A stretch of 64,000 bases of DNA from Blastocystis sp. Blastoise (GCA_039096225.1 JBBPEB010000032.1:682001-746000), one strand, 5' to 3'. Counted from the stretch's first letter, positions 18,953 to 36,736 are shown. The notes: generated by a model from the letters alone, not told the origin. A program made the numbers and translations.

Positions 18953-21900
18953 TTAAGAAATACCAAGAGCTGTAACAAAACTCTCTTTAACAACTTGAGT
19001 AAATACACTAACAAATGAAGATGCTGATGTTTGTGATTCTAAATGAACATGTTCTTGATCATAATATCCAACTAATTTATGATAGGTAGGCACCATAGCT
19101 TGACATCTTGCAGGTAAAAAGAATACATGAGCATCCATATTACGTAAATCAGTAACATGTCGATTCCAAACAGTATCCCAAGATTCATGTGTATATGGAT
19201 GGCAAGAACTATATGAGCAACTTTGATGACTATGAGCAGGTTGATCACCAATAATAATAAATGCAAATGCATATTCATCAGGAGGTAATGATTTTGTATT
19301 TTTTATTGAATCTTTTAATCCACCTTCTAAATCACAACAACAAGAACCACCGCCAGCACCTACTGTACCTAAATAACTCTCAATATGACGTGGATCTGTA
19401 GTTAAACCAGAAGGAAAACGAACAGCACTAGAGCCGGATGATATTTCAGGAATTTCTCTATACCCAACAAATTGAATATAAATTTTATTATTCATATTAT
19501 TATCCATCATATATTTTTCAACTTGTCGTATAGCATTTACAATAGATTGTTTTGTACCCGTAATTTCACCAGACATAGAACCAGTACAATCCATCATAAT
19601 AGATAAAACAAATGTTTGATTTCCTTTTAGTTTTCTTTCATCATAAGGAATATTAATAGTTTTTCTTTCATTAACAGGTATAATATCTAATGTTGTAGGT
19701 ATATCTTCAATACCACTAATTCCTTGGAAATAATATTTTTCTACATTTTCAAGCCAAGCCATAGAATTAGCGATCCAACGACTTGTACCAATAGTAGTAA
19801 ATTCTAAAAATAATTTAGAAGCAGCACTATCTATAATCATATGTCCTTCATTTCCTTTACTTTCACGTATCATAATAGCAGGATACCCTTCATTATCTCT
19901 AGCAAATACAAAATATCTATTACGAATTAATTCTTTTTCATCTAAAGCAGCTAATGTTTTACCTTCAAATATCTTAAAAATACCTGTATCTAAACGAATT
20001 GAAGTATCACCTTGATTCTTAATAATATCACCACCAACAGTAATAAATGTACCTGGATTTGTAGCTTGATTCTTCATACCACTTTTATCTCTTATCATTT
20101 CTTGACCACCTGCTACTTCTCCTTTTGGATCCGATAATTCATTAATATTTTCAAAATATTTATAATATATATCTGCTTCATAAGTATAAGGATAATTTTC
20201 AAGCATCCACATAACACCACCTCCAGAAAGATTAAATATATGAACAGCATTTAAAAATTCACTTAAATAATCAGGATCAGGATTCTTATCAGCATCATCA
20301 GGTTCAGTAGGTAATTTCTTATCACCAGGACTACAAGTAATAATAGATACTCTATATTTACCACTTAATAATTCTCTAGCAGCAGTAGCATAATCATAAA
20401 CAATATGACATTCAAATCCTTTTTGTTCTAATTTAATAATAGGAGACATACGATCACCAGAATAATCACCTTCACGTAATGATCTTTCAGTAATCTTTTC
20501 ATCAATAATCTCATTAGTTTTCTTATTTCTTTCATTTCGACATAAATATAATATAACAAATAATATATTATAACCTTTAAATTGTCCATCACGTACTAAA
20601 TCAAAATCATTATTAGCTTCTTGACCTTCATAATGTTCTATTTGATTATCAGAAGCTGCATATATATTATAACGACCTGCTAATTGTTCATATGTACCAT
20701 GAGCATTATTAATTGTTTCAATTAATTTCTTATTATTTACAATAATTGGTAAATTTTGTATTTTTTCTTTCATTTCTATAACTGGAGGAATACTAGCACC
20801 ACATACTATACTTAAACTAGCATTATTCATATTTAATAATGCATCTCTTAAAGCTTTAGGATTTGATGACCACATAAATGTAGGATATAAATCTTGATAA
20901 TCATATAATTTATATCCTAATCCAATACCTATACATGTAATATCAGGTTCAGATACATAAGGTAATATTGATTCTTTTTCTTTAGGTAATAATGTACCAT
21001 TTGTAAATATCATACAAATAGCAGATTCAGATCTTGCTTTCATTGTAGCATAAGCTACTTTTATAGTACTAGATAAACATGTATCTTGAGATGGTTTTGA
21101 TATTATACCTAAAATATTACTTAATATAGATTGAGTCCATATATCATTTGAAGAGATTCCTGTAGCTACTTGAATAATAGTATCTTTAGCTATCCATATA
21201 TCAATATGAGGTATAGACATTTCACTTAAACCACGTAATACTAATAATAAAGTATTATAACTATGAGCTTTATTAAAATCACAAAAAGATCTTTGAGTAC
21301 AATCGATTATTATAGAAACACAATAACTTCTTACTTTATTTCCTGTTTTTACTTTAAATATTTTACCATCACCTGTTCCTGTTAATACAAATCGGAAATA
21401 ATTACTATTATGTAAAGTAGTACCTGTAGTAGAAGGTACCCATGAAGTAGGTTTATTTGGTTGTAATATAGTACTATTAAATGCATTAAAGAATATATCA
21501 TTAGGTATTTTACCATTAAGGAAAGTAAATAATCGATCATTTTCACCATTAGGTTCATAATTTAAGAAACTATCTTGAATATCAGGTAATAATAATGATA
21601 TTTTTTGTTCATGTAAACTCTTACATATTGTATAATCTGTATCTTGATTTGAAGGATCTAATAAAGGAATACTATCTTCATTACTAGCAATTGAATAAGT
21701 AATATTATTAATATCACATTTCTTTTGGTCTCTTTCTTCTTTATAATAAAATAACTTTATAAGTTCTTCTATATCTAATATAGCTTCCAATGCTTCAATT
21801 GATTTAATTCTAAATACTAATTTACCAAAATTTTTATCAATATATTCATTTAATAGATCTTGATTTTCATCTATAAGTGATTCTTCATTATTTCCAATAA

Positions 21901-24900
21901 TTTGGAATAAAAAGAAATGAGGAAGTAATTTCTTTAATAATCGTTTAACACTTTCTTGAGAAGATATTAATTGTTCTGAAAAACAATCAGATATAAGAAT
22001 ATATGAACTTTTATCATCAATAGTAATATCCTCATATTCAAATATATCTAATGGTGTTGAAGGTACTTTTTTAACTCCTTCTAAATCAAATAATTTTGAT
22101 ATTTTTGATTGAATTGGCTCATTTTGTTCAGTTATAATAAATCCTTGACCTCTACTTCCAGTACATAATAATGTTGTTTGAATACCTAATTCTTCACATA
22201 CTAATAATAATAATATTGAAGTAATTGTTCTCATTCTTGATTTATTAGGTTTATGTGAAACATTTAAATCAAGAATTATAAACATATTCTGAATAAATTT
22301 ATTTCTTCTTAATTTATTACTTAATATAGAATTATATAAAACACTTAGAGTATGACGTAATATTGTATAAATAACAGGATATTCATCATGAAGAACATCT
22401 TTTATTATAGAAGTTCTTGGATCTAATAATTTTGTTTCTTTACCATGTTTTGGTTCCATAAATTTATCATCATCTTTTCGTTTAAATATCCAATTTACTA
22501 AATAATCATCTAATGACATATTTTCAAACATTTTAATAACTGTTTTAGATTCAACAGTCTTTAATTGATCTTGAGCATTTTGGGCTTCTTTCTTCTTCTT
22601 CTCTTCTAAAGCAGCTTTTTCAGCATCAGTAAGATTCTTCTCATCTGGTAATTCAGCAGGATTAATATTTTCATCTAATACTGACATATCAGGTACAAAC
22701 ATTGCAATATTTCCTTTTTTCTTTATATCTTTTGATATATCACCTTTTATTTGAGCATAACCTCCTTTCTTTCCAGTTTTCCTTCCAGTACCTGAAGATG
22801 TAACAATTTTTATTGTAGATTCAGGTTTATATTTCTTTTGTTCTTCAAGATATTCTTTTTCTTCATCTGTAACTGGTATTTCTTTTTGAATAACATCTTC
22901 ATTACCAAATTCTTTATTATTCCAACTTAAAGGATCAGAATCTCCTAATAAACTACTTAATGTAGTTATTTTCTCTCGAATAAATGGAATATACCTTTCT
23001 TTATTTGTTTGTAAATATATATATATACGTTGACATAATTCTTGATATTGATTCTTTGTACATAATAATATAGGTAAATAAGATAATGCATTTAAATATT
23101 TTTGTCCATCTTTACTTAATATATCATCTTTAAATGTTTTTATTTTATCACCAAATGAAGGTGGAACAACTAAAGTATTAGGCTGATAATTCGCTAAATT
23201 ATATGGAGTTATTCGACCATTATCAATAAGAAAATAAGTATATTTAGCATTACGTGCATAACTAAAATATATAGAATAATCTTGCAAGAAAGGTTGACCT
23301 CTATTACTATAACTCTTATTAAATCTATATGTCTGATTTTGATATGTTATTTCTAAACTAGTATATGAATTAGGGCATGTAATACTTCTATTATATCCTT
23401 CACAAGGTCTATTTGTTTTAATAATATCAGAATTAGAAGAAATAGCAAATTGTAGATGAAGTTCTAATGTAGATTTTGATGTTTTCATTTGAATAAAAGC
23501 TTCTCTTTCAGTAATAGTATCAAAAGAATCTGTAAATGAAATTAAAAGTTGATTTGATTTATTTGATATAACACAATTTGGGTCACTCTTTGAAGTAAAA
23601 TTAATATCTAATTTATAAGGATTAATAATAGGAATAATTATTGTTGGCTCTTGATGTGATTTCATATATTCTGGTAAATAAAATATATTATCTTTAGGTA
23701 ATATAATATCTTTAGGAGATTCACCTAATATAACAATACAATCTTTTAATTCATAACTAGTATTATTACTTCTTTTTATTAATTTACTTTCATTAGGTAA
23801 GAAAATACTATCTGATATTAATTGTGGTTCTTTTAAGTCTTTTATTCTATATTCTAAAGACGAAATATTACGAGTTTGATTGTCTAATTGATAAATTGTA
23901 TTTATTAATTTTTGTTTTACATCATTATAATCTTTTAAATCATCAATATTTGGCTCACACCATACTAAAGGATATAAGCCATATTGATTATATGCATTAC
24001 TCGTATTATCTTGTCTATAATTATCACCAGGTATTATTTTCTTTTTATTTATAGATTCAGGTGTCAAAGTTAAATCTTTATTTGATATATCAACTTCATT
24101 CTGATTTATAGGTAACTTCATTACATAACAATCTGATTGATTATCAGGTACTAATAATGATACTGTAGCAGAATTCTTCACCCATCCCTTTGAACATATA
24201 CCAAATAATAATGAATTATTATTAATACTATTTTTTAATTTTATGTCGTTTTCATCATATCGTGATGAATTATTTGTAATAAATTTATATAATTCACTTG
24301 GATCAGGATAAAATATAGTTTCTATGGATAATTTTTTAGTAACATTACACATTAACTGTAATAATACAAAAGCAACAGTTCCATTAAATCCTTGATAGTT
24401 TACGTAATTAGTTTGAAGATCTTTCAAAGAATATTGAGCATAATAAGGATAAAAATAATCATATATTTCTATATCGTTACTTGGAATAATTTCTAAATCT
24501 AATGGAGACCAAGGTAAAACAATAACAAAATAATCACTTCCTGTCTTATTAATAAAATGATAATAACAGGATCTATCTGTTTGCTGTTTATTTCTATCTA
24601 ATTCAATAGTATCCTTATTTAAAAACACAGAATGACCCTGATAATTACAAAAACGAAATTGAACTTTTAACTTAGAATAATTATTCACATTCTTAATATA
24701 AGCCAATTTGAAATACATTGATTTTGGCTTAGATGCAACAAAAATTTTATATTGAGAGAGTTGTCTATAAACTTCTTCAACATCATTATATCTTAGATTA
24801 CTTTGATATATAGATTTATCTTTTACAAATTCATTTAAAGCATTAAAATATAACATTGTTTTTACCCACTCAATTTTTTCCATATTTCTGTATTTATTTT

Positions 24901-27900
24901 GATAATCATCATTTTTATTTCCATTATTCTTAACATATTCATTAATTTTATTCATAATCATTTCATGTCGATATTTTAATTCATTTTGTAATGCTGTTCT
25001 CTCACTAGAATATTGTTTTTGTAAAGCTTTTGAATCTGTTAATTGATGTTCTAAATCTCTTTTTTCATTGTCATATGCATTTTGTTCAATAGAATCTAAT
25101 TTACTAATAATTGTATTAATATCTTTAATTTGATTTTGATATTGCATAATATATTGTTTTCTTTCATTATTTCTAAACATATCTTCAAATAAACTATATA
25201 TAAGTTCATAAGTATCTTCACGTTTATAAGGACATATTAGTTTAATTCTTTCACTCATAGAAAGGCTTGTTCTTATAATAAATAAATCAACATCTTTAAT
25301 ATATGAATTCACTTGAAGATCATATTCATATTGTAACCAACATTGATGATATATTTCACCAGGTTCAGGTTTTTGAGTATTACCATATATCTTTAAAAAT
25401 CCACAACATTGTTCCATTTCTTTACTATTTAAAAATTCATTATTATCAATTTTATTTTTTAATTCATAAATAACAGGTTTAAATGTAAGTGAAGTTCTTC
25501 TATCAGATATATTACCAAATTGAAGTTCATATGCAACATTAAATTGTGGTTTTTCCTTTTGAATACGGTTGTTACTATCTTTTAAAAGCCAATTTAATTT
25601 ACCTAATTCAATTAATGCAGCATTAACTTCTTTTTTTTCTTCTTCTTCATCATCATCTTCATTTATTGAATGTATATAAAAATCATAAGATTTTATAATA
25701 GATAATGTCTTTATATCAAGTATAAAAGATTGTGCTAAAAAACCCATAAAACAATTTATATATATTTTTAAAGCATCATAATGATTAGGTAATTCTTTTG
25801 CATTTTTAAATATTTCTATACTTTGAAGATTTAATTCTTCAAACATAGAATAAAATTGAAAGAATGCAGAAGAGATATTCATATTTTTTGATAATAACTC
25901 TTCACAGAAAACAATAAAATGACTACATTTACAATATAAACGTGAATGTTTATTATCTATAGAATTATAGGATATATTTTTATCAAAATTACAAACTTGA
26001 TTAAAAGCCATTGAAAACTCATTAATATTAACAATATCTTTAATAGCATCTAATTCTTTTGCAATAGCAGGATCAAAAGCAGATAATGTATTGACCCATC
26101 TTTCTATAGCATATGCTCTTTGTCTAGCTTTATCATTTTTAGCTCTTGCTGCATAAATAATATCATCTAAAGCTTTCACTTTATTACGAATTTCATCCAT
26201 ATATGTTTTAAGTTCTGAAGGATATTTCTTTTGTTTTATTATTTTATCATATGCTTTATCCATACTTTGTTGGCATTCTCCAAGACGTTTTCTTAAAGCA
26301 TTTAATGTTTGTATATTTTGTTCATTTTGTCTATCAATCTTTTTACCAATTGAATATTGTTCACAAATAATATGACAATTTTTAATATAACTTATTAATT
26401 CTTGAATATTAATAGTTTTACTATCATCTAAATTATTAAGATCATCCCAAATTACTTTAAATATTTGTTTATAAGGTTGTATATTAGAATTACAATAAAG
26501 ATCAGATTCTTTATTTGCTAAATAATGGAATAAAAATATATGAGCTATTTCATCTTCACCAACATCAAAATAATCACTTAATACAGGTATCTGACTGTGT
26601 AATAAAGGATGTAATAAATGAGAATTATCTTGTTGATCTTCTTCATGTTGAGAATAATTATCATAATTGTTATTACCATAATTATTATTACCATAATTAT
26701 TATTACCATAATTATTATTACCATAATTATTATTACCATAATTATTATTACTATAATTATTATTACCATACTTATTATTACCATAATTATTATTACCATA
26801 ATTATTATTTGATTTAAACAAATTTTTCTTTTCTTTTAAAAATAATTCATATTCATTTAATTGTTTCCATCGTTTCCAATTTATATAGAATGTTGAATCA
26901 GGATTATCAATAGGTTTATTTTCATTTTCATAATTTGTAATTGTTTGTTCAATTAAATATAAAGGATAAATAATTAAAGAAGAACGTAATTTATGTATAC
27001 AACTTTCTATTTTAGGAACATCAAGTTTAATATCAAATGAATCTATTGATATACCTAAAACTTTTAATATTTTATCTTTAACTCTTTTAATATCTGGATT
27101 CATTTTAGATATTTCAATAATAAATAATGTATAATCATCATCAACAATACCTACTTTCTTAGGATCAAATACAATAGCATTATTTGATGGTTTATGTCCA
27201 TATTCTTCTTTAAAATCATTTTCATTATCAGTCTTAATTATTCTTAATGCTTGTCTAAAATTTTTACCTTCTTCAACTCCAAAATATTTTGGATCTATTT
27301 TACTACTTATATTTGGATCTTGTTTCTTTTGATTAATATAAGCTAATTCTTGAACAGTTTTTTGATTTGATAATAAATCTGTTGCAATAATAATACAACG
27401 AGATAATAAAGGTGGAGGAATAACAGTTATATTATTCGTAGATAATGTAAAAAATAATCGAAATTCTGGATGTATTAATTTTTTACCACAATCTGATCTT
27501 AATACTTTTTTATGAGTAATAGGATCTAATATATAATCTTCTTCATTAGCTGTACCTACATAAGTACATTCTACATCTGATTCTAATAATTTAAAAGTAG
27601 GTTTTTCTTCACATAAACTATTAAATCTTTCTAATAATTCACCACTAGCTAAATGAATATCTTCAATTAATATCCAATACCCATTTTCCATAGCATCCGG
27701 TAAAGGTCCATTTCTAAATCTTAATATAGGTTTACCATTATCTTCTAATAATTCTAATTCACCTAATAAAGTAGAAGAAGAAGATTCAGAATGTAATGGA
27801 ATACGAATTAATTTCTTTTTCATTAATTCTGCATATCTTTGTATAGTATACGATTTACCTGAAGGTGAAGGACCATATAAAATAATAGTACGTTTACTCT

Positions 27901-30900
27901 CATAAGATAATGCTAATTTATAACATAATATTTTTTCAATAGTAACCATATAATCATTCTTTTCAGGTTTAGATGTAGGTAAATGAACTGTCCATGGACC
28001 TTTAAATGTAATAGAACTATTTTCTATTTTAATATTAATATCATTAACATTATTAATTTTTAATGCTTTATTAATTTTTTCATAACCATCACCAAAGAAT
28101 TTACAACCAAAAACAATCCATAATGAAGCATATATATCTAAATGACCTCTTTTACTTAATTCAGACACTTTAATAGTATCTCTTAAAGAAAAAGGTATAC
28201 GATATTGGGTTGATAATTCTAAAGAAGTAATAAATAATGTTGATAATCGTTCTGCAAATTCAGGGTTTACGATTGTATTTCTATTTTGTTTTTGAATAGG
28301 ATCATTTTCTAATAAAGGATCATTAGCAATACCTTCTATAATTGATTGACTAATCTTTAATAATTCATATATAGAATAACTTATATCTTTAAAGAATAAA
28401 CAAGATTTTACCATAGATGAAGGTAATGTATTTCTTTGAGAAGACATAATAGCAGGATTTAATGTACATATAATTGTCATAGGAGGTAATAATATTTTAC
28501 CAAAACCAGGTATGAAGAAATCAGTTTTTTCTTTTTTATAACTTGTTTTAATTAATGATGTCATAACTTCTAATACATCCACAGGAGCTAAATTAATTTC
28601 ATCTAATATTAATACATGTTCTTCATTAGGATTATTTTGTAAAAATGTTGTTAATTTACCAGGTTGAAATACTAAATTTTTATTTTCTATTTTATAACCA
28701 CCAAATAAATCTTGTATACTCATATTGGGTGCAAAATTAAATCTTTCTGGTTTTATATTATATAATTCATATAAAGCAATAGCACATGCAGATTTACCAA
28801 TACCAGGTGCACCTTCTAAAATAATAGGTATTTTATGAACCCAACCAATAACTAAGGAAATAGCCATTAAAATAATAGTTTTTACAGGATAAAATTTATT
28901 TTGATTTGCATCTTCATTAAATAATGCCCAAACTTTATCAATAATATCTTTATTAAATATTTCTAATAATTGATTTTTATCAACATGACTATCGTCATTA
29001 GGTGTTAATAAATCAATAAGTGATTTCGATACTTGATCTTTAAAAGATAATCGTGATAAACTACGACGTCCATAACTATCAGAAATACAATAATTTACAA
29101 AATATAAAGCATTTGGAAAAGAAGTAAATGCATTTTCTATTTTTTCTAATAATTTTAAGAAAGAAAATGATATATTTTCTTTTTGTAAGCCAGCAGATAA
29201 TGATATATAGCGTTGTGTTATTTTTAAACATTCATCTAATTTTGATAATATAGAATATGATTGACGTATATCAGCATCTGAAATATCAGCACAAAATATA
29301 GTGAAAAATTCAGTATTATTAGCAATCATATTATATACATTATTTTCAATAGTACCTACAATAGGAAAACTATGTTGAGATATATTTATATTATTTTCAT
29401 AATCAAAAGGATAATTTGATAATTCATTAGCAAATAATCCATTACTATCTTCAAAGAATCCTTCATATCTAGAATGATTTAATAATGGTAATAATCGTTG
29501 ATATGTATCTTTACTTAATAAATCAATATTATCTAAAATAACTAATTTATTTTTTATTATATTACTTGTAATAACACCAGGTTGAAATAATAAACTAGAA
29601 ACTGAATTATTCATAGCTAAAGGTATTAATTTTGCATACCAATTAGAAAAAATATTATATTTTTGTTCATCAACTATTCTATATTCTTGTAACATATTAT
29701 TTAATGATTTAATATCAATTAATATAGTTTGACCAATTAAATGATAAGTTTCTAAACTATGAGACATTTCAATATGTTCATAATCGGGATATATATAAGG
29801 GAAAAGTTTATCTTTTTCTTCACCATTTCCAACTAAAATATAAGCATAATAATTATGTAATAAACATATTTTAAATAAAGCTTCTAAAAACCATGAAGAA
29901 TTATTATCAATTGGTTTATATAATTGAACATTAATAGAAAGAAATGCTTTTGTTAATATATATTCAAATACTTTGTGTTCATTATTATTATTATTATTAT
30001 TATTATTCTTTGCTAATTTATATGTAACTTGATTATCAACAAAACCTGAGTATTCTGAATATTCATCATGATTATTCTCACAAAGACTACTGTAATCTTT
30101 AGAATATAAAAATATTATATGTAGTATATTTAACTTTTGTGATTTATTTTTATTTAATAATAATATTTCTTTACATTTAATTAAATAATTTAAAGATAAA
30201 TGTGTTGTTTCTTCATCTAATAAATTATTAATAATAGGCTCATTAATAATTTGCTTAATTTCATCTATAGTATATTGAGGAATAATATGTCTAGAAGCAT
30301 AAGAAGGTATAATAAAAGGTAAACGATCATGAGAAGTAGTAAATACAAATATTATTCTAAAATTTGGATGTATATGTATATCTTTATGTGAATATCTAAA
30401 TGTATGAACAAGTGGATCCATAAATTGTAAAAATTCTTCAAATAAATCTTTTGTAATATTTTGTGCTTTATCAATAATTAAAATACGACCCTCTTTAATA
30501 CATTGTAATAATATACCATCATGAAATTCACCATCTATAGAATAAAATCCCATTAATTGACCAGATTCAGAATCATTTGATAAATGTAAAATAGATATGT
30601 TATTAATTTTACGTCTATGAATAATTTCTTGAAGTAAATAACTTTTACCACTATTTATAGGACCTTCTAAACATAATGTACGATTTATACATAAAGATAT
30701 AAAAAATTTATTAATTTCCATATTATGAACAAGAATATTTTTAAATATATCTAAACTAGAAGCAAAATTCTTTTTTAAATAATAATCAATATAACTAGGT
30801 ATTAAATCTTCAGGAGTAAAAGGAATTAAGAAATCTATTATTTTTTGTATATTTAATTTTTCAAAATAATTATAATTATCATATTCTTTCTTTAATACTT

Positions 30901-33177
30901 TCTTTAAATTCATATTTTCTACATATATATCTTTATCAAATAATGAATATTTCTTATTTAATTGTGGAGAATAATTCAAATTCTTTAAATCAAATTTACT
31001 AGGATATACATATACAATTAAAAATCTATTTAATAAAGCAGGTGAAAATCTTTTCATAGCATTCTCTTCTACAGTAGCAATAATTCTAAAATTAGGATGA
31101 ATAGTAATAACAGGTTGAATAGTACGTTCATCAAAACGAATAATATGATTATTTCCATCATTAGGAACTAATTCTAATAATGAATTTAATCTTTCAATTA
31201 CATTAGATTTTAATAAATGTAATGATTCAAATATACATGTTTCACCATTTATAATAGATTTTAATAAAGAAGAATCTTTCCAAATAGGTTTTCTTTTATT
31301 TTCTTTATTAAATACATAAGAACCAATTAATACTTCATTTGAAATAGAAGAACAACCATAAATAGTATTAAAATGATTTTTTGAATTTTCATTTGTTTTA
31401 TAATATGAATAAGCATCAGTATATGTTGATGAAGTATATACAGAAGGAGAAACAACTAAAATATGATTTCCTGCTTTCATGGATACATCCATATCATATA
31501 CAAATTTATCCCATATTCTTTGTATTAATGGTTCTTTCATATATGTAATAGGTATAGTAGGTATACGTTCATTTTCATCTAAAGGAGTTTCAAATACTAA
31601 ATGAATAGCATGAGATAAACTAGCTTTTTCTCTTAATAACATTTTTACACGTGTATGATCACGAATAGTATATTCTTTAATAACAGTAGATTCTGGTATA
31701 TATTTTTCATTTAGAATAATATGACTATCATTTTGACTAGATTGATTTTCAGATAATTTAAGATTATCATCAATATTTTGTTGTAATTTCAATTTACGTT
31801 TTTCATTACGTTCTCTACATTGTTTATGTGCAGCCATAGTATATTCTTGTGCATCTTCATCTTTAATAATAGATTTAGAAATATTATTTAATTCAGTATC
31901 ATCCATAGGAGGGAATTTATTTTGACCACCAAATCGAAAATGATCTAAAACTCTATTACTAAATTTAGTACGTTCATAAGTAGAACCAGCAGGATTTTGA
32001 GTAGCAATAATACGGAAATCTTTATGCATTTTATATATTTGATAACCAGATGTTTTACTTATATATAATTCTTCAGAATCTAAACAACCCATAAGGGGTT
32101 CTATTATTTCTTCTCTTGCTAAAGACATTTCATCTAATAATAATATATAACCATTAATAAATGCTTGAGTAAATGGACCTTCAGAAAATACTAATTTTTG
32201 TTTTCCATTAATAGTTTTAATAACATAATCACCTATAAGATCTTCTAAAGTAGTTGAAGGAGAGAAATTAAATCTTAATAAAGGTAATTGACATTTATGA
32301 CATATATATTCAACAGTATATGTTTTAGCAGAAGAAGTGGTACCTTCAATTAATAAATGAATACCAGATTTAATTGCATTTTCTACATAATCAATACGAG
32401 CACGTGCTTTGGTTGTTAATGTAGGAGTAATATGATTATTAACGGCTATAACTGATTTATAAGGTTTCATTGAATAATCTACATTATCAATAGTGACAAC
32501 TACTTGAGAATCTTTAGAATGAGCAATAAAATTCTTAAAAGTACAAGTAAATCTTTCATGATTATTAAATTGTATTTCTTTATTAAATACATCTTCTATA
32601 TAATAAAAATGTATTTGTTCTCCCATAATATTATGACCATTATTATCAGTTTCAAGATCAGGTAAATAAAAAAGTGAATTTCCTTGTTGATTAACATATT
32701 CAAAATAAAATTCATCATTTTGAACAAATGAATCTAAACCTTGATATATAGCAGAATTTAATGTTTCTGGAGCTAATCCTGAAGTTTCATTATGTATAGT
32801 TAATCGATTTATTGCTACAACATCTATAGTATCACCATAACCATATCCTTTTTGAATCTTTGCTATTAATACACCTATATATATTATTGATATATATTTG
32901 TTATATATATATTATTGATATATATATTTGTATTATATATATATTGTTTTAATAATATATTATTGATATATATTTGTATTATATATATATATATATATAC
33001 CAGTTTCATTATTATCAACAACAAAATCAGAAGAGAAAGAATGTAATAATGAAGAGACATTCTTTCCATCTATTAATATCTTTATAGTATTTTCTTTAGG
33101 TAATGTTTCAATATATTGTTTTAATAATATATCATATTCTTGTTCTTCAATATCACCATCATTTTCTTGTACTATAG

Positions 33178-33261
<84 letters not shown>

Positions 33262-33366
33262 CAGATAACATTGATAGATGTATAATTATGTGTAAAGGGA
33301 ATAACTAAATATTCTTTTTTCTCATCATCTACTTCATCGAAATTCATATGTAACTGACCTATAAAA

Positions 33367-33439
<73 letters not shown>

Positions 33440-34966
33440 TATACTTAAAAGTGGAATAGTAACAGATTCACAATAGAAATCATAACCATCATTTGTTTGT
33501 TTTAATTTATATACAATACGAATAGAATCTGTTTCTATATATATGTTATATTATAAATAATAATTATAATAATAATAAGCATATATATATATATTACCTT
33601 TCATAATAAGTTGTTGAGTCATTTTATTTGTTTGACAAAGAAAAGAATTAATAAATGGAAGAGTAAATATATCTTTTGAATCATCAATAAAATCATCTAT
33701 AATATATATATATATATATATATAATTAATACGTGGAAAATTATAATAATAATATATATATACATGTTTGTTCCATCATATATAACCAATTAATAGGATC
33801 ATTCATATCATGCTCAACTTGATCTCTAGCTATATATGAAGTTATTAATAATAATAATAATAATTATTATTATTATTATATATATATACAAGTAATATCA
33901 CAATGATGTTCTTCCATTTTATCAATAGATAATTTAGGTATCTATATTATATATATTAAAAAATAATAATTATTAATAGAATATATATAAAAAAAATTAA
34001 AACATATATATAATAAAAATAATTTATATGTATATACTGTAAACACATGAAAGTGCATAGAATCGGTATAACTATCAAAAACAGTAGTATCTTCAGTTAA
34101 TTCTTTAGAATTATATATTATAAATAAATGTGTATTATCATCATTTATTGAACGATCTTTCTATATATATATATATATATATTATAATATTAATAATAAT
34201 AACATGTATAATTATATATTTACTTTAATAATATTAATAAAAGTTTCATAAGAATTACATTCCAAATAAGGACATTCATTCTTTTTACCATCTTGATAAT
34301 ATATATGAACAATCTATATAATAATAATAATAATAATAATAATATATATATATATATATATTATTTATATATACTTCAGGTACAGGTTCAGGAGTATCTT
34401 CAGTTTCAGTTTCCTTTTCAGTTTCTTTTTCGGAGTTATTATCAGTATTATTATCAGTATTATCATTAATATGATCAGTGTTAATATTATCATCACTTAT
34501 ATCTACTTCTTGTTTCGGTTCATTATTATTATCATCGTGTCCATGATCATGACCATGTTTATGATGTTTATGATGTTTCGTTTGATTACCTTTCTCTTCT
34601 CCTTGTTTTTCTTCTTGAGAATTTGAAGTAATACCAAAAATACCTTGATTATTACCTTGAATACTTTTATCTTGTGAATTAATAGATGCTTCACCTTGAT
34701 TAAATGCATTTTCAAATATAGAAGCTGGTAAACTATTCTTATCTGGTATAATTATATTTAAAAGCGAAGGCGTCATAGTAGGGGATCCAGTAGAAGAAGC
34801 AGCAGTAGTAGCAGATGATTCTTTAGGATCAAATATATTAATAGGTTTATAAACAGGAGAAGAGGAATGCTGTTCATTATTAGCATTCGATTGAGGTATA
34901 AGAGGAGCTTGAAGATTTATACCATCTAGTAGAAGAGGAGGAGGAGAAGGTGATCCTGATTCTATA

Positions 34967-34997
<31 letters not shown>

Positions 34998-35217
34998 ATA
35001 TATATATATAAATATATAAATATATATTTATATATTAAAAAATGGTAATTAAAATTTAAAAAAAATTTAAATAATTTTTTAAATGTTATTTATTATACTT
35101 GCTCCTGATTGATTTGAAATAGATTCTTTAAGTGGAGGTATACTTGTCAACTATACAAATAAAATTATATATAATATTCTACAAAAAATAAATATTTCCA
35201 AGAAAATATTAAAAAAA

Positions 35218-35264
<47 letters not shown>

Positions 35265-35897
35265 TTTTAGCAGGTTCTTGTTCAACTAAATAAAGTTGTG
35301 ACTGGTGAGATATATGTGAATCAAATAAAGTTGCAGAATCATCAAGAAATTGAGAATTATACCATAATTTCGGATTTTGATAGAAAAGATTACGACTTTG
35401 GGCAAGCTATATGAAAAAATCAATAAAAAATCATTAAAAAAAAATTAAAAATATTAAGATATTGTTAGAATTATCTAAAATAACGTATATACCCTAACAA
35501 AAAATTGTTTGACCTCTTGAACTGTATTTCCTGTATAGCAACTCAAGGGTTCAGAAGAATTAGCAACTACACAATAGACGATGATGCTTTGATTTTGAGG
35601 AGCAACTTGCTGCAATTGACTTCTACGAAGAATATATATACAGCTTTGGTTATGAAGTTGCTTTGAAGCTAAGGTACCCGAAAAATCCAAATATTTTCCA
35701 TCATAAAGCCAGACTTGCTCTTCTTGGGATACTCCAAAATATTGCTATATTAAGAATAAATAAGAAAAAGAATGGATCAAAACATATAATCATACAGCGA
35801 TGTAAATAACTAGCTCAAAACACTCAATGTTTAGTGACGGTAGAGGGACTACCCTTGTCTGATTATCAATGATTAATGAAAGGATGAATTGAGACAT
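18953..35897 (-). CDS. Giant protein of about 5,281 aa: 3 ubiquitin-like domains, midasin-like 6x AAA+, linker, 2 vWA, GATase-like domain, C-terminal vWA
   Basis: Hand-spliced exons 35897-35796, 35744-35493, 35406-35263, 35150-35099, 34961-34375, 34313-34224, 34160-34038, 33941-33890, 33829-33764, 33696-33598, 33534-33445, 33358-33263, 33171-33001 and 32874-18953. All junctions are GT-AG and phase-consistent, 15,846 nt in total. Walker A motifs GTTSSAKT, GPINSGKS, GAPGIGKS, GPSPSGKS. Walker B motifs LLLDEMSLA, LILDEINLA, ILIEDIHLA. Midasin-type ERLNSLLE and HPNFRI. vWA motifs IIIDCTQRS and MMDCTGSM. Confidence 0.85.
26660..26810 (-). repeat. Coding 15-nt tandem repeat, about 10 copies of NNNYG, inside the giant AAA protein
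   Basis: Repeated ccataattattatta on the + strand; the ORF reads SNNNYGNNNYGNNKYGNNNYS... Confidence 0.9.
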
Positions 35898-36736
35898 CAG
35901 ACAAAAAAAAAAATTGAATGTTTCAATACAAAAACTTAAAAAAACTGAGTTTCTTTTTCTCTATAACTCGGTAATCCTAGTAATGGATTCCATATACAAA
36001 AATAACCATGATTTATTAGTTGAAATATGGATATTTCTTAGATTTCCCATGATTATGGATTTAATGCTAACTTAGTTATTTGTTGTGTTTTTATTGGAGA
36101 AATCAGTGAGCATCCAATTAAATAAAAGAAGGTGACGTTGTAGCGATGACGACCCAATTCGTAATACAGTTAGAAACTTCTTTTCCAGTTTTTTTTACTA
36201 TTATTCTGGTTTTTAGAAAATAAAACGTATTCTGAGATATACAAGGCATATTTATGATGATTCATATTTTTAGAAACGGTATTTTGTTGTAGAAATTGTG
36301 ATTATGTTTTTTTAATTGTTGCTTTTTTAAATGAAATTCAATATATGTTTATAGGAGTATATCGTCTGATATTTATTACATAAGTTATCTAATTCATATA
36401 TATATAAAGAAAGAAAATTTGTTTTTTTTTGAGAAAAAAAAGTGTATATTGTAGTTATTTCTTATACAGAGCTTTATGAAAAACTTAAATAAAAAAATAA
36501 GAAATTAAAACAAAAAATTATTGTTTGATATTTATTATATAGTGATTTATTATTTTAAGAGCAACTAATGGATAATAATGTGAAATGTTTTGAATAGTGA
36601 TTGTTTTGAATTATAATAATATATATAAAAAAAAAGATAATATAAAAATTTAGGTATTTAAAAAAATATAAATAAATATAAAAAAGTGGTCAATATAAAT
36701 AATATATATATAAAGAGAGAGAGATAAAAGTATGTA

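Follow-up and report, generated by a model that had tools for sequence, protein, structure and literature searches.

A giant midasin-related AAA+ protein of Blastocystis with N-terminal ubiquitin-like domains and a tail of von Willebrand factor A and GATase1-like domains

Domain architecture of the giant gene

The minus strand of the stretch JBBPEB010000032.1:682001-746000 of the tortoise-associated Blastocystis sp. Blastoise (64,000 nucleotides on contig C21 of the assembly, hereafter the window) contains a gene of 14 exons, which encodes a giant non-MDN1 relative of midasin of the AAA_5 (dynein/midasin) class and carries ubiquitin-like (Ubl) domains in the same polypeptide. Rebuilt from its coordinates, the gene is open throughout and yields a product of 5,281 amino acids (aa). 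Thirteen short exons (35897..33001) are joined in frame to exon 14, which covers 13.9 kb. The long open frame of this strand (18953..32626, 4,557 aa) is 98% identical to the GenBank protein WA158_005327 (P0001), a hypothetical protein of Blastocystis sp. 'Blastoise' with 5,255 aa. From the N- to the C-terminus, the product comprises a di-Ubl head, a flexible linker, a possible third beta-grasp domain, an N-terminal domain without fold assignment, six AAA modules, a linker of approximately 1,580 aa, the von Willebrand factor A (vWA) domains vWA1 (probable) and vWA2 (with a midasin-type metal ion-dependent adhesion site, MIDAS), a class I glutamine amidotransferase (GATase1)-like domain, and vWA3. 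The original prediction, made from the DNA alone, had proposed two tandem Ubl domains and a weaker third one, spliced onto a midasin-like AAA+ ring with three vWA domains and a GATase-like domain. The tandem Ubl domains, the ring, and the GATase-like fold were all recovered, while the third Ubl domain is a lead only and the first vWA domain a probable assignment. The features of the gene are as follows.

Exons 1 to 7 (−): 35897-35796, 35744-35493, 35406-35263, 35150-35099, 34961-34375, 34313-34224, 34160-34038
Exons 8 to 14 (−): 33941-33890, 33829-33764, 33696-33598, 33534-33445, 33358-33263, 33171-33001, 32874-18953
35796..35897 (−): exon 1, aa 1-34, with the start codon and Ubl1's first strands; donor GTATGA; equals the N-terminus of P0001
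35493..35744 (−): exon 2, aa 35-118, remainder of Ubl1, reaching about aa 76, then Ubl2's first half, beginning at about aa 85; paralogs on contigs C29 and C3 have a homologous exon with introns at identical positions
35263..35406 (−): exon 3, aa 119-166, second half of Ubl2; best PF00240 stretch 106-159
34375..35150 (−): exons 4-5, aa 167-379, flexible linker of low complexity, rich in S/T/P, N, D/E, and His
34038..34313 (−): exons 6-7, aa 380-450, possible third beta-grasp/Ubl domain, lead only
32360..33941 (−): exons 8-13 and start of exon 14, aa 451-813, region ahead of AAA1 without fold assignment; conserved from about aa 679 in all Blastocystis paralogs compared
27596..32359 (−): AAA modules, with AAA1 at 32359-31943, AAA2 at 31375-31022, AAA3 at 30676-30341, AAA4 at about 29773-29321 (weak), AAA5 at 28825-28451, and AAA6 at 27886-27596
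AAA1: Walker A present, Walker B hhhhDE
AAA2: P-loop absent, no entry for Walker B
AAA3: Walker A present, Walker B DK
AAA4: P-loop absent (weak module), no entry for Walker B
AAA5: Walker A present, Walker B hhhhDE
AAA6: Walker A present, no hhhhDE motif found
30174..30097 (−): extra intron annotated in GenBank, in frame, 78 nt, GT-AG, inside the long frame; removes 26 aa (5,281 to 5,255)
22307..27043 (−): linker between ring and tail, about 1,580 aa; no D/E-rich tract; (NNNYG)n repeat close to its beginning
21686..22306 (−): vWA1, aa 4139-4345, probable vWA with degenerate metal site; strand/helix order, Asp ending strand 1
20819..21697 (−): vWA2, aa 4342-4634, midasin-type MIDAS with N-terminal extension; metal site degenerate in this paralog
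19709..20596 (−): GATase1-like domain, aa 4709-5004, ThuA/GIFT type; no conserved Cys-His-Glu triad
18956..19627 (−): vWA3, aa 5032-5255, VWA_4 type, intact DxTxS...D metal site; stop codon at 18953-18955

AAA+ ring, linker, and tail

Searches and folding were performed with the deposited protein P0001 or with exon-level sequences; the joined translation of 5,281 aa served for frame checks and for the comparison with P0001. The ring consists of six AAA_5 (PF07728) modules, five of which exceed the cut-off, with AAA4 being weak (E 0.0085). Its best named matches are midasins (E ~1e-60). As far as the motifs can tell, the ring would be competent as an ATPase. A tether rich in D and E, predicted to be absent, was indeed not found: the richest 100-aa segment of the protein, located in the N-terminal linker, reaches 28% D+E, compared to 47–52% in two midasins, in which 30–42 segments of this size contain at least 35% D+E. 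An (NNNYG)n-type repeat is located just past the AAA ring at approximately 26660-26810 of the window.

The fold of the tail was modeled with AlphaFold2 for aa 4060-5255 (27 homologs, mean predicted local distance difference test (pLDDT) 78.6) and compared to solved chains by exhaustive structural alignment. The best match of vWA2 among the solved chains searched is the MIDAS domain of Rea1 in complex with the Ubl domain of Rsa4 (6qta_A; Z 17.2, root-mean-square deviation (rmsd) 3.0, 208 out of 258 residues), and this match includes the extension ahead of the vWA core. The human MDN1-MIDAS/NLE1-UBL structure (8ql1_A) was matched with Z 15.8. The family consensus of the vWA2 metal site is DxSxS...TDG, and the domain is located internally in the chain rather than at its C-terminus. 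The vWA3 domain adopts a standard vWA fold (Z 18.8, rmsd 2.5, 180 aa) and resembles predicted models in alpha-kinase/VWA_4 clusters. With PF25106 (VWA_4) it scores 15 bits, which is under the cut-off, compared to 33.9 bits in a Tritrichomonas homolog; unlike the alpha-kinase/vWA proteins with VWA_4, the protein has no alpha-kinase domain. The DxTGS...D motif of vWA3 is common across the family, and vWA3 has the only intact metal site in this copy; the metal sites of vWA1 and vWA2 are degenerate. While vWA2 and vWA3 are thus identified by their folds, the assignment of vWA1 as a probable vWA domain comes from the order of its strands and helices and the position of its motif in the model; both a profile searched against PDB sequences and a Pfam search of 25 homologs found nothing.

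The GATase1-like domain, when folded alone, gave a pLDDT of 89.3 and a predicted template modeling score (pTM) of 0.90. Its closest structural matches are the C-domain of site-1 protease (8uw8_A, Z 15.6), a ThuA-like protein (1t0b_A, Z 14.9), the GIFT domain of IFT52 (5fms_A, Z 14.8), and OST48 (Z 14.6), all non-catalytic members with which it shares the GATase1-like fold over approximately 200 residues. True amidotransferases rank below these matches, down to Z 10, and Foldseek agrees. In contrast to the fold, membership in any of these families is not visible on the sequence level, where a profile search against the PDB resulted only in weak CheY/Rossmann matches. The catalytic triad Cys-His-Glu is not conserved among 34 family sequences: a Cys follows strand 4 in 25 of them, no column contains His at 70%, and one Glu is invariant. 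Domains of the vWA and GATase1-like types are a recurrent combination in bacteria.

N-terminal ubiquitin-like head

The two tandem Ubl domains are supported by the Pfam ubiquitin family (PF00240), which aa 1-170 passed with 33.0 bits against a cut-off of 25.4, divided over two stretches, and by a phmmer alignment placing residues 33-159 in register with di-ubiquitin. Ubiquitin_5 (PF18037) nearly passed on the same region (23.1 bits). In the alignment to di-ubiquitin, the positions of the Ile44/Val70 patch are hydrophobic in the Ubl domains of this gene. Neither Ubl1 nor Ubl2 ends in a C-terminal Gly-Gly, and the chain continues past both; because of this, they are regarded as integral, non-conjugatable Ubl domains. 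Both fall in the ubiquitin family proper, and a mapping onto the Ubl type of Rsa4 and Ytm1 was not achieved. They are followed by the linker of approximately 200 aa encoded by exons 4 and 5 (D+E 17%, S/T/P 27%, N 13%). For the predicted third, weaker Ubl domain (aa 378-455), the closest named ESM Atlas clusters are ubiquitin/Rad60-SLD (0.86–0.90, language-model neighbors), but Pfam gave no match; this region is a lead only.

Integral N-terminal UBL proteins are known from the Rad23/Dsk2 type, and the parkin-type Ubl domain is cis-inhibitory. In these proteins, too, a non-cleavable domain of the ubiquitin family is located at the N-terminus and flexibly linked to a larger enzyme, whereas here the Ubl domains are arranged in tandem, perhaps even as a triple, on a giant AAA+ motor. 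Literature searches turned up no combination of Ubl domains with a giant AAA+ motor.

The paralog family and its distribution

The 33.3-Mb assembly (34 contigs) was searched with the tail as query. Fifteen loci with open frames of 4,400–5,500 codons share the vWA-GATase-like tail, which at about 15 kb each amounts to approximately 0.7% of the genome DNA. For a genome of 33 Mb, giant genes have expanded to a large extent. Shorter copies sharing the tail were found as well.

Giant paralogs besides this locus: C29:495k, C16:699k, C3:836k, C3:1354k, C25:938k, C3:1319k, C26:830k
Giant paralogs, continued: C30:43k, C16:1706k, C8:1426k, C8:1518k, C13:1034k, C29:363k, C13:690k
Shorter copies sharing the tail: C26:440k, C21:1116k, C22:16k, C16:17k, C13:832k, C13:891k

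Beyond this genome, the tail served as query of an exhaustive HMMER search, which yielded 238 clusters, with Tritrichomonas musculus, T. foetus, Kipferlia bialata, Chilomastix cuspidata, and Aduncisulcus paluster as named relatives. In their annotations, the members are called hypothetical or 'AAA+ ATPase domain-containing', and the UniRef label of the Kipferlia relative is 'Midasin'. A protein of T. musculus has the ring and 807 aa of the tail in common with the giant protein. The segment ahead of the ring differs among the members of the family. Several Tritrichomonas members have almost nothing before AAA1, a T. musculus member of 6,157 aa (P0150/P0278) carries a protein kinase domain (PF00069, E 2.8e-16) at this position, and other Blastocystis paralogs have 780–1,100 aa of unassigned sequence. 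Ubl domains were seen only in this gene, in the paralogs on C29 and at C3:822-838k, and in a mini-gene of 657 aa. The di-Ubl exons of the C29 paralog were found with E 6.7e-17, and the Ubl domains of the paralogs are just 24–37% identical to each other. In the Ubl-bearing C3 paralog, the open frame (C3:836670-838436) ends after the GATase-like domain and lacks vWA3; a further exon was not looked for. The mini-gene (WA158_006295, P0122; C25:9275-11314) is located about 9 kb from the contig end and encodes one Ubl domain, the GATase-like domain, and vWA3. In the tail it shares 80% identity with the giant gene, while its Ubl domain shares 34% identity with Ubl1.

A whole-genome scan with PF00240 missed even the intron-split Ubl domains of this gene and cannot exclude Ubl domains in other paralogs. 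A word-indexed search with aa 1-800 returned only the protein itself, a metagenome scan with exon 2 found no match, and neither tblastn nor Pfam detected a Ubl domain in the 2.4 kb upstream of the relative P0003 (40% GC, GCA_019973095.1), where a faint similarity noted by eye was disregarded. Relatives in other protists had been looked for as a check on the prediction; the ring and the tail are shared by metamonads, but the di-Ubl head was seen only in a Blastocystis subfamily. A weak Ubl-like match at C3:1537939-1538196 (E 1.5e-4) adjoins no giant paralog.

Proposed mechanism and role of the Ubl head

As a whole, the architecture is best explained by an ATP-driven single-chain motor other than MDN1, which grips with its vWA tail and uses the Ubl head as a docking or regulatory handle; we consider this account probable, though with moderate confidence. 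By analogy to Rea1/Mdn1 and the MoxR-vWA systems, ATP would be turned over mainly at AAA1 and AAA5 and thereby remodel the ring, while AAA3 and AAA6 would probably bind nucleotide only. The long linker would carry the movement of the ring to the tail, where the vWA domains, in this paralog chiefly vWA3 with its intact metal site, may grip a client to pull or release it. The GATase1-like domain could serve as a non-catalytic binding scaffold. The non-cleavable di-Ubl on its linker of approximately 200 aa appears to be a subfamily-specific addition in the variable N-terminal slot and would most likely act as a tethered docking or regulatory handle. This interpretation is favored because the family fills the N-terminal slot with different modules.

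A ring as the engine and a vWA tail as the gripper would resemble the MoxR-class AAA+/vWA pairs (NorQ-NorD, RavA-ViaA, CbbQ-CbbO, the Bat operon, and the conflict systems of Kaur et al., 2020; PMC7159879), in which the same AAA+ clade is coupled to vWA domains and the pairing is a general theme (PMC7159879). The vWA domains of NorD and BatB occur among the structural matches of the tail. In contrast to the giant protein, which is a single eukaryotic chain of approximately 5,300 aa encoded with introns and without operon context, the MoxR-vWA systems consist of separate small proteins forming hexamers.

Several observations weigh against the proposed motor with its handle. Of the six AAA modules, two are degenerate, and a canonical Walker B motif is missing from AAA3 and AAA6. 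In the metal site of vWA2, the second Ser is replaced by Arg and the strand-4 Asp by Asn in this paralog. In addition, the comparison of the mini-gene to the tail of the giant gene gave a synonymous divergence (dS) of 0.17 and a ratio of nonsynonymous to synonymous divergence (dN/dS) of 0.65, which speaks for relaxed or diversifying selection and against tight conservation; the mini-gene is a recent, weakly constrained partial copy.

The handle might function like a classic integral UBL, which brings the motor in trans to proteasome subunits or UIM/UBA proteins as ubiquitin receptors or passes extracted clients on to degradation, without any contact to the vWA domains of the motor. N-terminal integral UBLs are an established class of proteasome-interacting modules (Hartmann-Petersen and Gordon, 2004, as cited in PMC8837202), and a targeting role would fit the variable N-terminal slot as well as the features of the Ubl domains themselves, i.e., the match to the ubiquitin family in register with di-ubiquitin, the hydrophobic patch positions, and the missing Gly-Gly end. 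However, the protein showed neither a ubiquitin-binding nor a proteasome-related domain, and the low identity among the Ubl domains of the paralogs is unusual for a handle that has to fit a conserved receptor. We regard this role as possible, but would not expect it to be the correct one.

Somewhat less likely, and in our view doubtful, is the scenario in which the Ubl domains are ligands of the motor's own MIDAS-type vWA domain once the tail has docked back onto the ring in the manner of Rea1, resulting in self-loading or in auto-inhibition until a client displaces the Ubl domain. The MIDAS of Mdn1 docks on the AAA ring beside its N-terminal side and grips the Ubl domain, while the linker transmits tension (PMC8837202). 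Ubl domains are the sole confirmed ligands of this MIDAS type (PMC8837202), and the two MIDAS structures matched best by vWA2 were both solved with a Ubl domain. Moreover, the Ubl fusion is retained in three full-length paralogs. The degeneration of vWA2 counts against the simplest form of this mechanism: besides the Arg in this gene, the strand-4 Asn is present in all three Ubl-bearing paralogs. One of these paralogs (C3:836k) has no vWA3 in its open frame, the Ubl domains match PF00240 and could not be related to the Rsa4/Ytm1 type, and other members of the family have a kinase or nothing in the N-terminal slot. The mini-gene, which links one Ubl domain straight to the GATase-like domain and vWA3, is a natural construct that would fit a partnership of Ubl and tail. 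As a proof it is weakened by its recent origin and low constraint (the dS and dN/dS values given above) and by the unequal identities of its Ubl domain (34%) and its tail (80%), so that it is suggestive only. Docking of Ubl1 (aa 1-80) to the tail from vWA2 to vWA3 (914 aa) gave a score of 0.00 in a run without controls and is no evidence either way. Considering both scenarios, a Ubl partner outside the motor, for example a protein of the ubiquitin-receptor type, is ranked slightly ahead of the motor's own vWA domains.

Gene model and transcript structure

In the rebuilt model, the predicted in-frame splicing of the 13 upstream exons was reproduced, including the junction 33001/32874. All 13 introns follow the GT..AG rule, are 51–137 nt long, and have a GC content of 3–20%, compared to 19–36% in the exons; the introns consist mostly of (TA)n and (ATT)n microsatellites. 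The whole 64-kb window has a GC content of 21%, at which a stop is met about 10 codons into a random frame; the exons that stay open for 84, 196, and 57 codons are therefore not due to chance. The deposited protein matches the rebuilt model in its first 1,541 and last 3,713 residues, the 78-nt intron at 30174..30097 being the sole difference. In the annotation pipeline of the tortoise Blastocystis genomes, introns were retained only if supported by RNA sequencing (RNA-seq) with at least three reads per junction (PMC10690189). The joins of the exons are further supported by the C29 and C3 paralogs, which share the di-Ubl exons with introns at the same positions, and those of exons 8-13 and the start of exon 14 by the metagenomic relative P0002 (47% identical in the ring), whose uninterrupted frame is collinear with aa 444-820, the region equivalent to exons 7-14.

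In view of these data, it is very improbable that the Ubl exons represent a separate small gene arranged head-to-tail upstream of the giant AAA gene and joined to it by an artifact of the gene model. Read-through at the exon-5 donor encounters a stop after 29 codons, which makes a short Ubl-only isoform conceivable. However, every junction is in frame and similar in length to the other introns at the locus, the deposited model joins the same exons after a pipeline that demanded RNA-seq support for each intron, the layout is identical in two paralogs, and P0002 runs through the equivalent stretch without interruption. In addition, the gap at this position is 61 nt, whereas the tortoise-derived Blastocystis genomes (21–23% GC, long variable introns) have a median intergenic distance of 645–719 bp (PMC10690189). 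One gene with Ubl domains in cis, as originally predicted, is thus borne out by the model, the deposited protein, the RNA-seq-filtered annotation, and the intron positions of the paralogs.

Upstream of exon 1, an initiator-like CTCAGT element (ACTCAGTTTT, at 35941-35950 of the window, 45 nt upstream of the start codon) was considered and rejected for want of enrichment: allowing one mismatch, the 10-mer occurs 10 times in the window versus 5.3 times expected, and 8 out of 100 shuffles reached 10.

Relation to midasin

A separate canonical MDN1 gene, the presence of which had been proposed as a check, was found on contig C34 (165.9-187.3 kb; C34:165900-187250). It has many exons and its own MIDAS tail, and its exon-level matches to a Pythium midasin are 31–68% identical, whereas the giant paralogs are 29–36% identical to the same query over the matched stretch. 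The lid families of midasin (PF17865, PF17867, and PF21108) were absent from the 4,557-aa frame in hmmscan (E ≤ 0.01) and also missing from the Pfam list of P0001; nearly all listed midasins carry these lids. In a tree of the ring, the nine canonical midasins formed a clade with a support of 100 that excluded the giant family. The tree was calculated quickly with FastTree and rooted at the midpoint, with several rows of biased composition; the C34 fragment lies beyond the ring and is uninformative there. The separate MDN1 on C34 and the exclusion from the midasin clade agree with the predicted non-ribosomal relative of midasin. Three further proteins in the tree (P0005, P0013, and P0029; one of Apatococcus lobatus with 7,295 aa and two ENA proteins of 7,600–7,900 aa) group together in a separate clade that excludes the canonical midasins. 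One of them is labeled midasin, and they may represent another non-canonical giant family.

The giant protein and Midasin/Rea1/MDN1 have six AAA_5 modules in one chain, a very long linker, a MIDAS-like vWA domain (Z 17.2 and 15.8), and Ubl domains in the system in common. They differ in that the Ubl domains of the midasin system reside on separate substrates, while those described here are part of the same polypeptide. Furthermore, lid families and the D/E-rich tether are lacking, and the MIDAS-type domain is internal, degenerate, and flanked by another vWA domain, followed by the GATase1-like domain and a vWA domain of the VWA_4 type. The giant family is also present in multiple copies, with a true MDN1 elsewhere in the genome. 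That the giant gene is itself the midasin (MDN1) of the organism and serves 60S ribosome assembly can practically be dismissed despite the midasins among the best named matches of the ring and the 'Midasin' label of the Kipferlia relative, given the far higher identity of the C34 gene, the missing lid families and D/E-rich tract, three extra domains in the tail, 15 paralogs, and a position outside the midasin clade.

Significance for Blastocystis and the giant family

To our knowledge, midasin is the only eukaryotic motor of such a build that has been studied, and its single known job is to pull Ubl-bearing factors off pre-ribosomes. The giant genes represent a second, multi-copy family of midasin-like build in anaerobic gut protists, with a richer and different tail and, in one subfamily, with Ubl domains fused to the motor. 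Literature searches found no description of the giant family. The original prediction regarded the architecture as undescribed, which stands insofar as the domain layout has no account in searchable papers. The sequence itself, however, is known, as it is already deposited in GenBank as a hypothetical protein, and the gene belongs to a subfamily of a 15-member paralog family.

A more far-reaching scenario, which we consider rather improbable at present, is that Blastocystis and metamonads share an undescribed family of giant midasin-derived motors, one subfamily of which captured into the motor the Ubl domain that sits on the substrate in ribosome assembly; as an internal pseudo-substrate, it would gate the MIDAS/vWA tail by self-loading or auto-inhibition. 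The multi-copy, fast-evolving family with its swappable heads (Ubl or kinase) could then parallel the bacterial MoxR-vWA conflict systems. Contact of the Ubl head with the tail would make the protein a natural one-chain model of how the gripping of Ubl domains by MIDAS is switched on and off. Without such contact, the family would still constitute a large unexplored set of remodeling machines, which occupies approximately 0.7% of the genome DNA.

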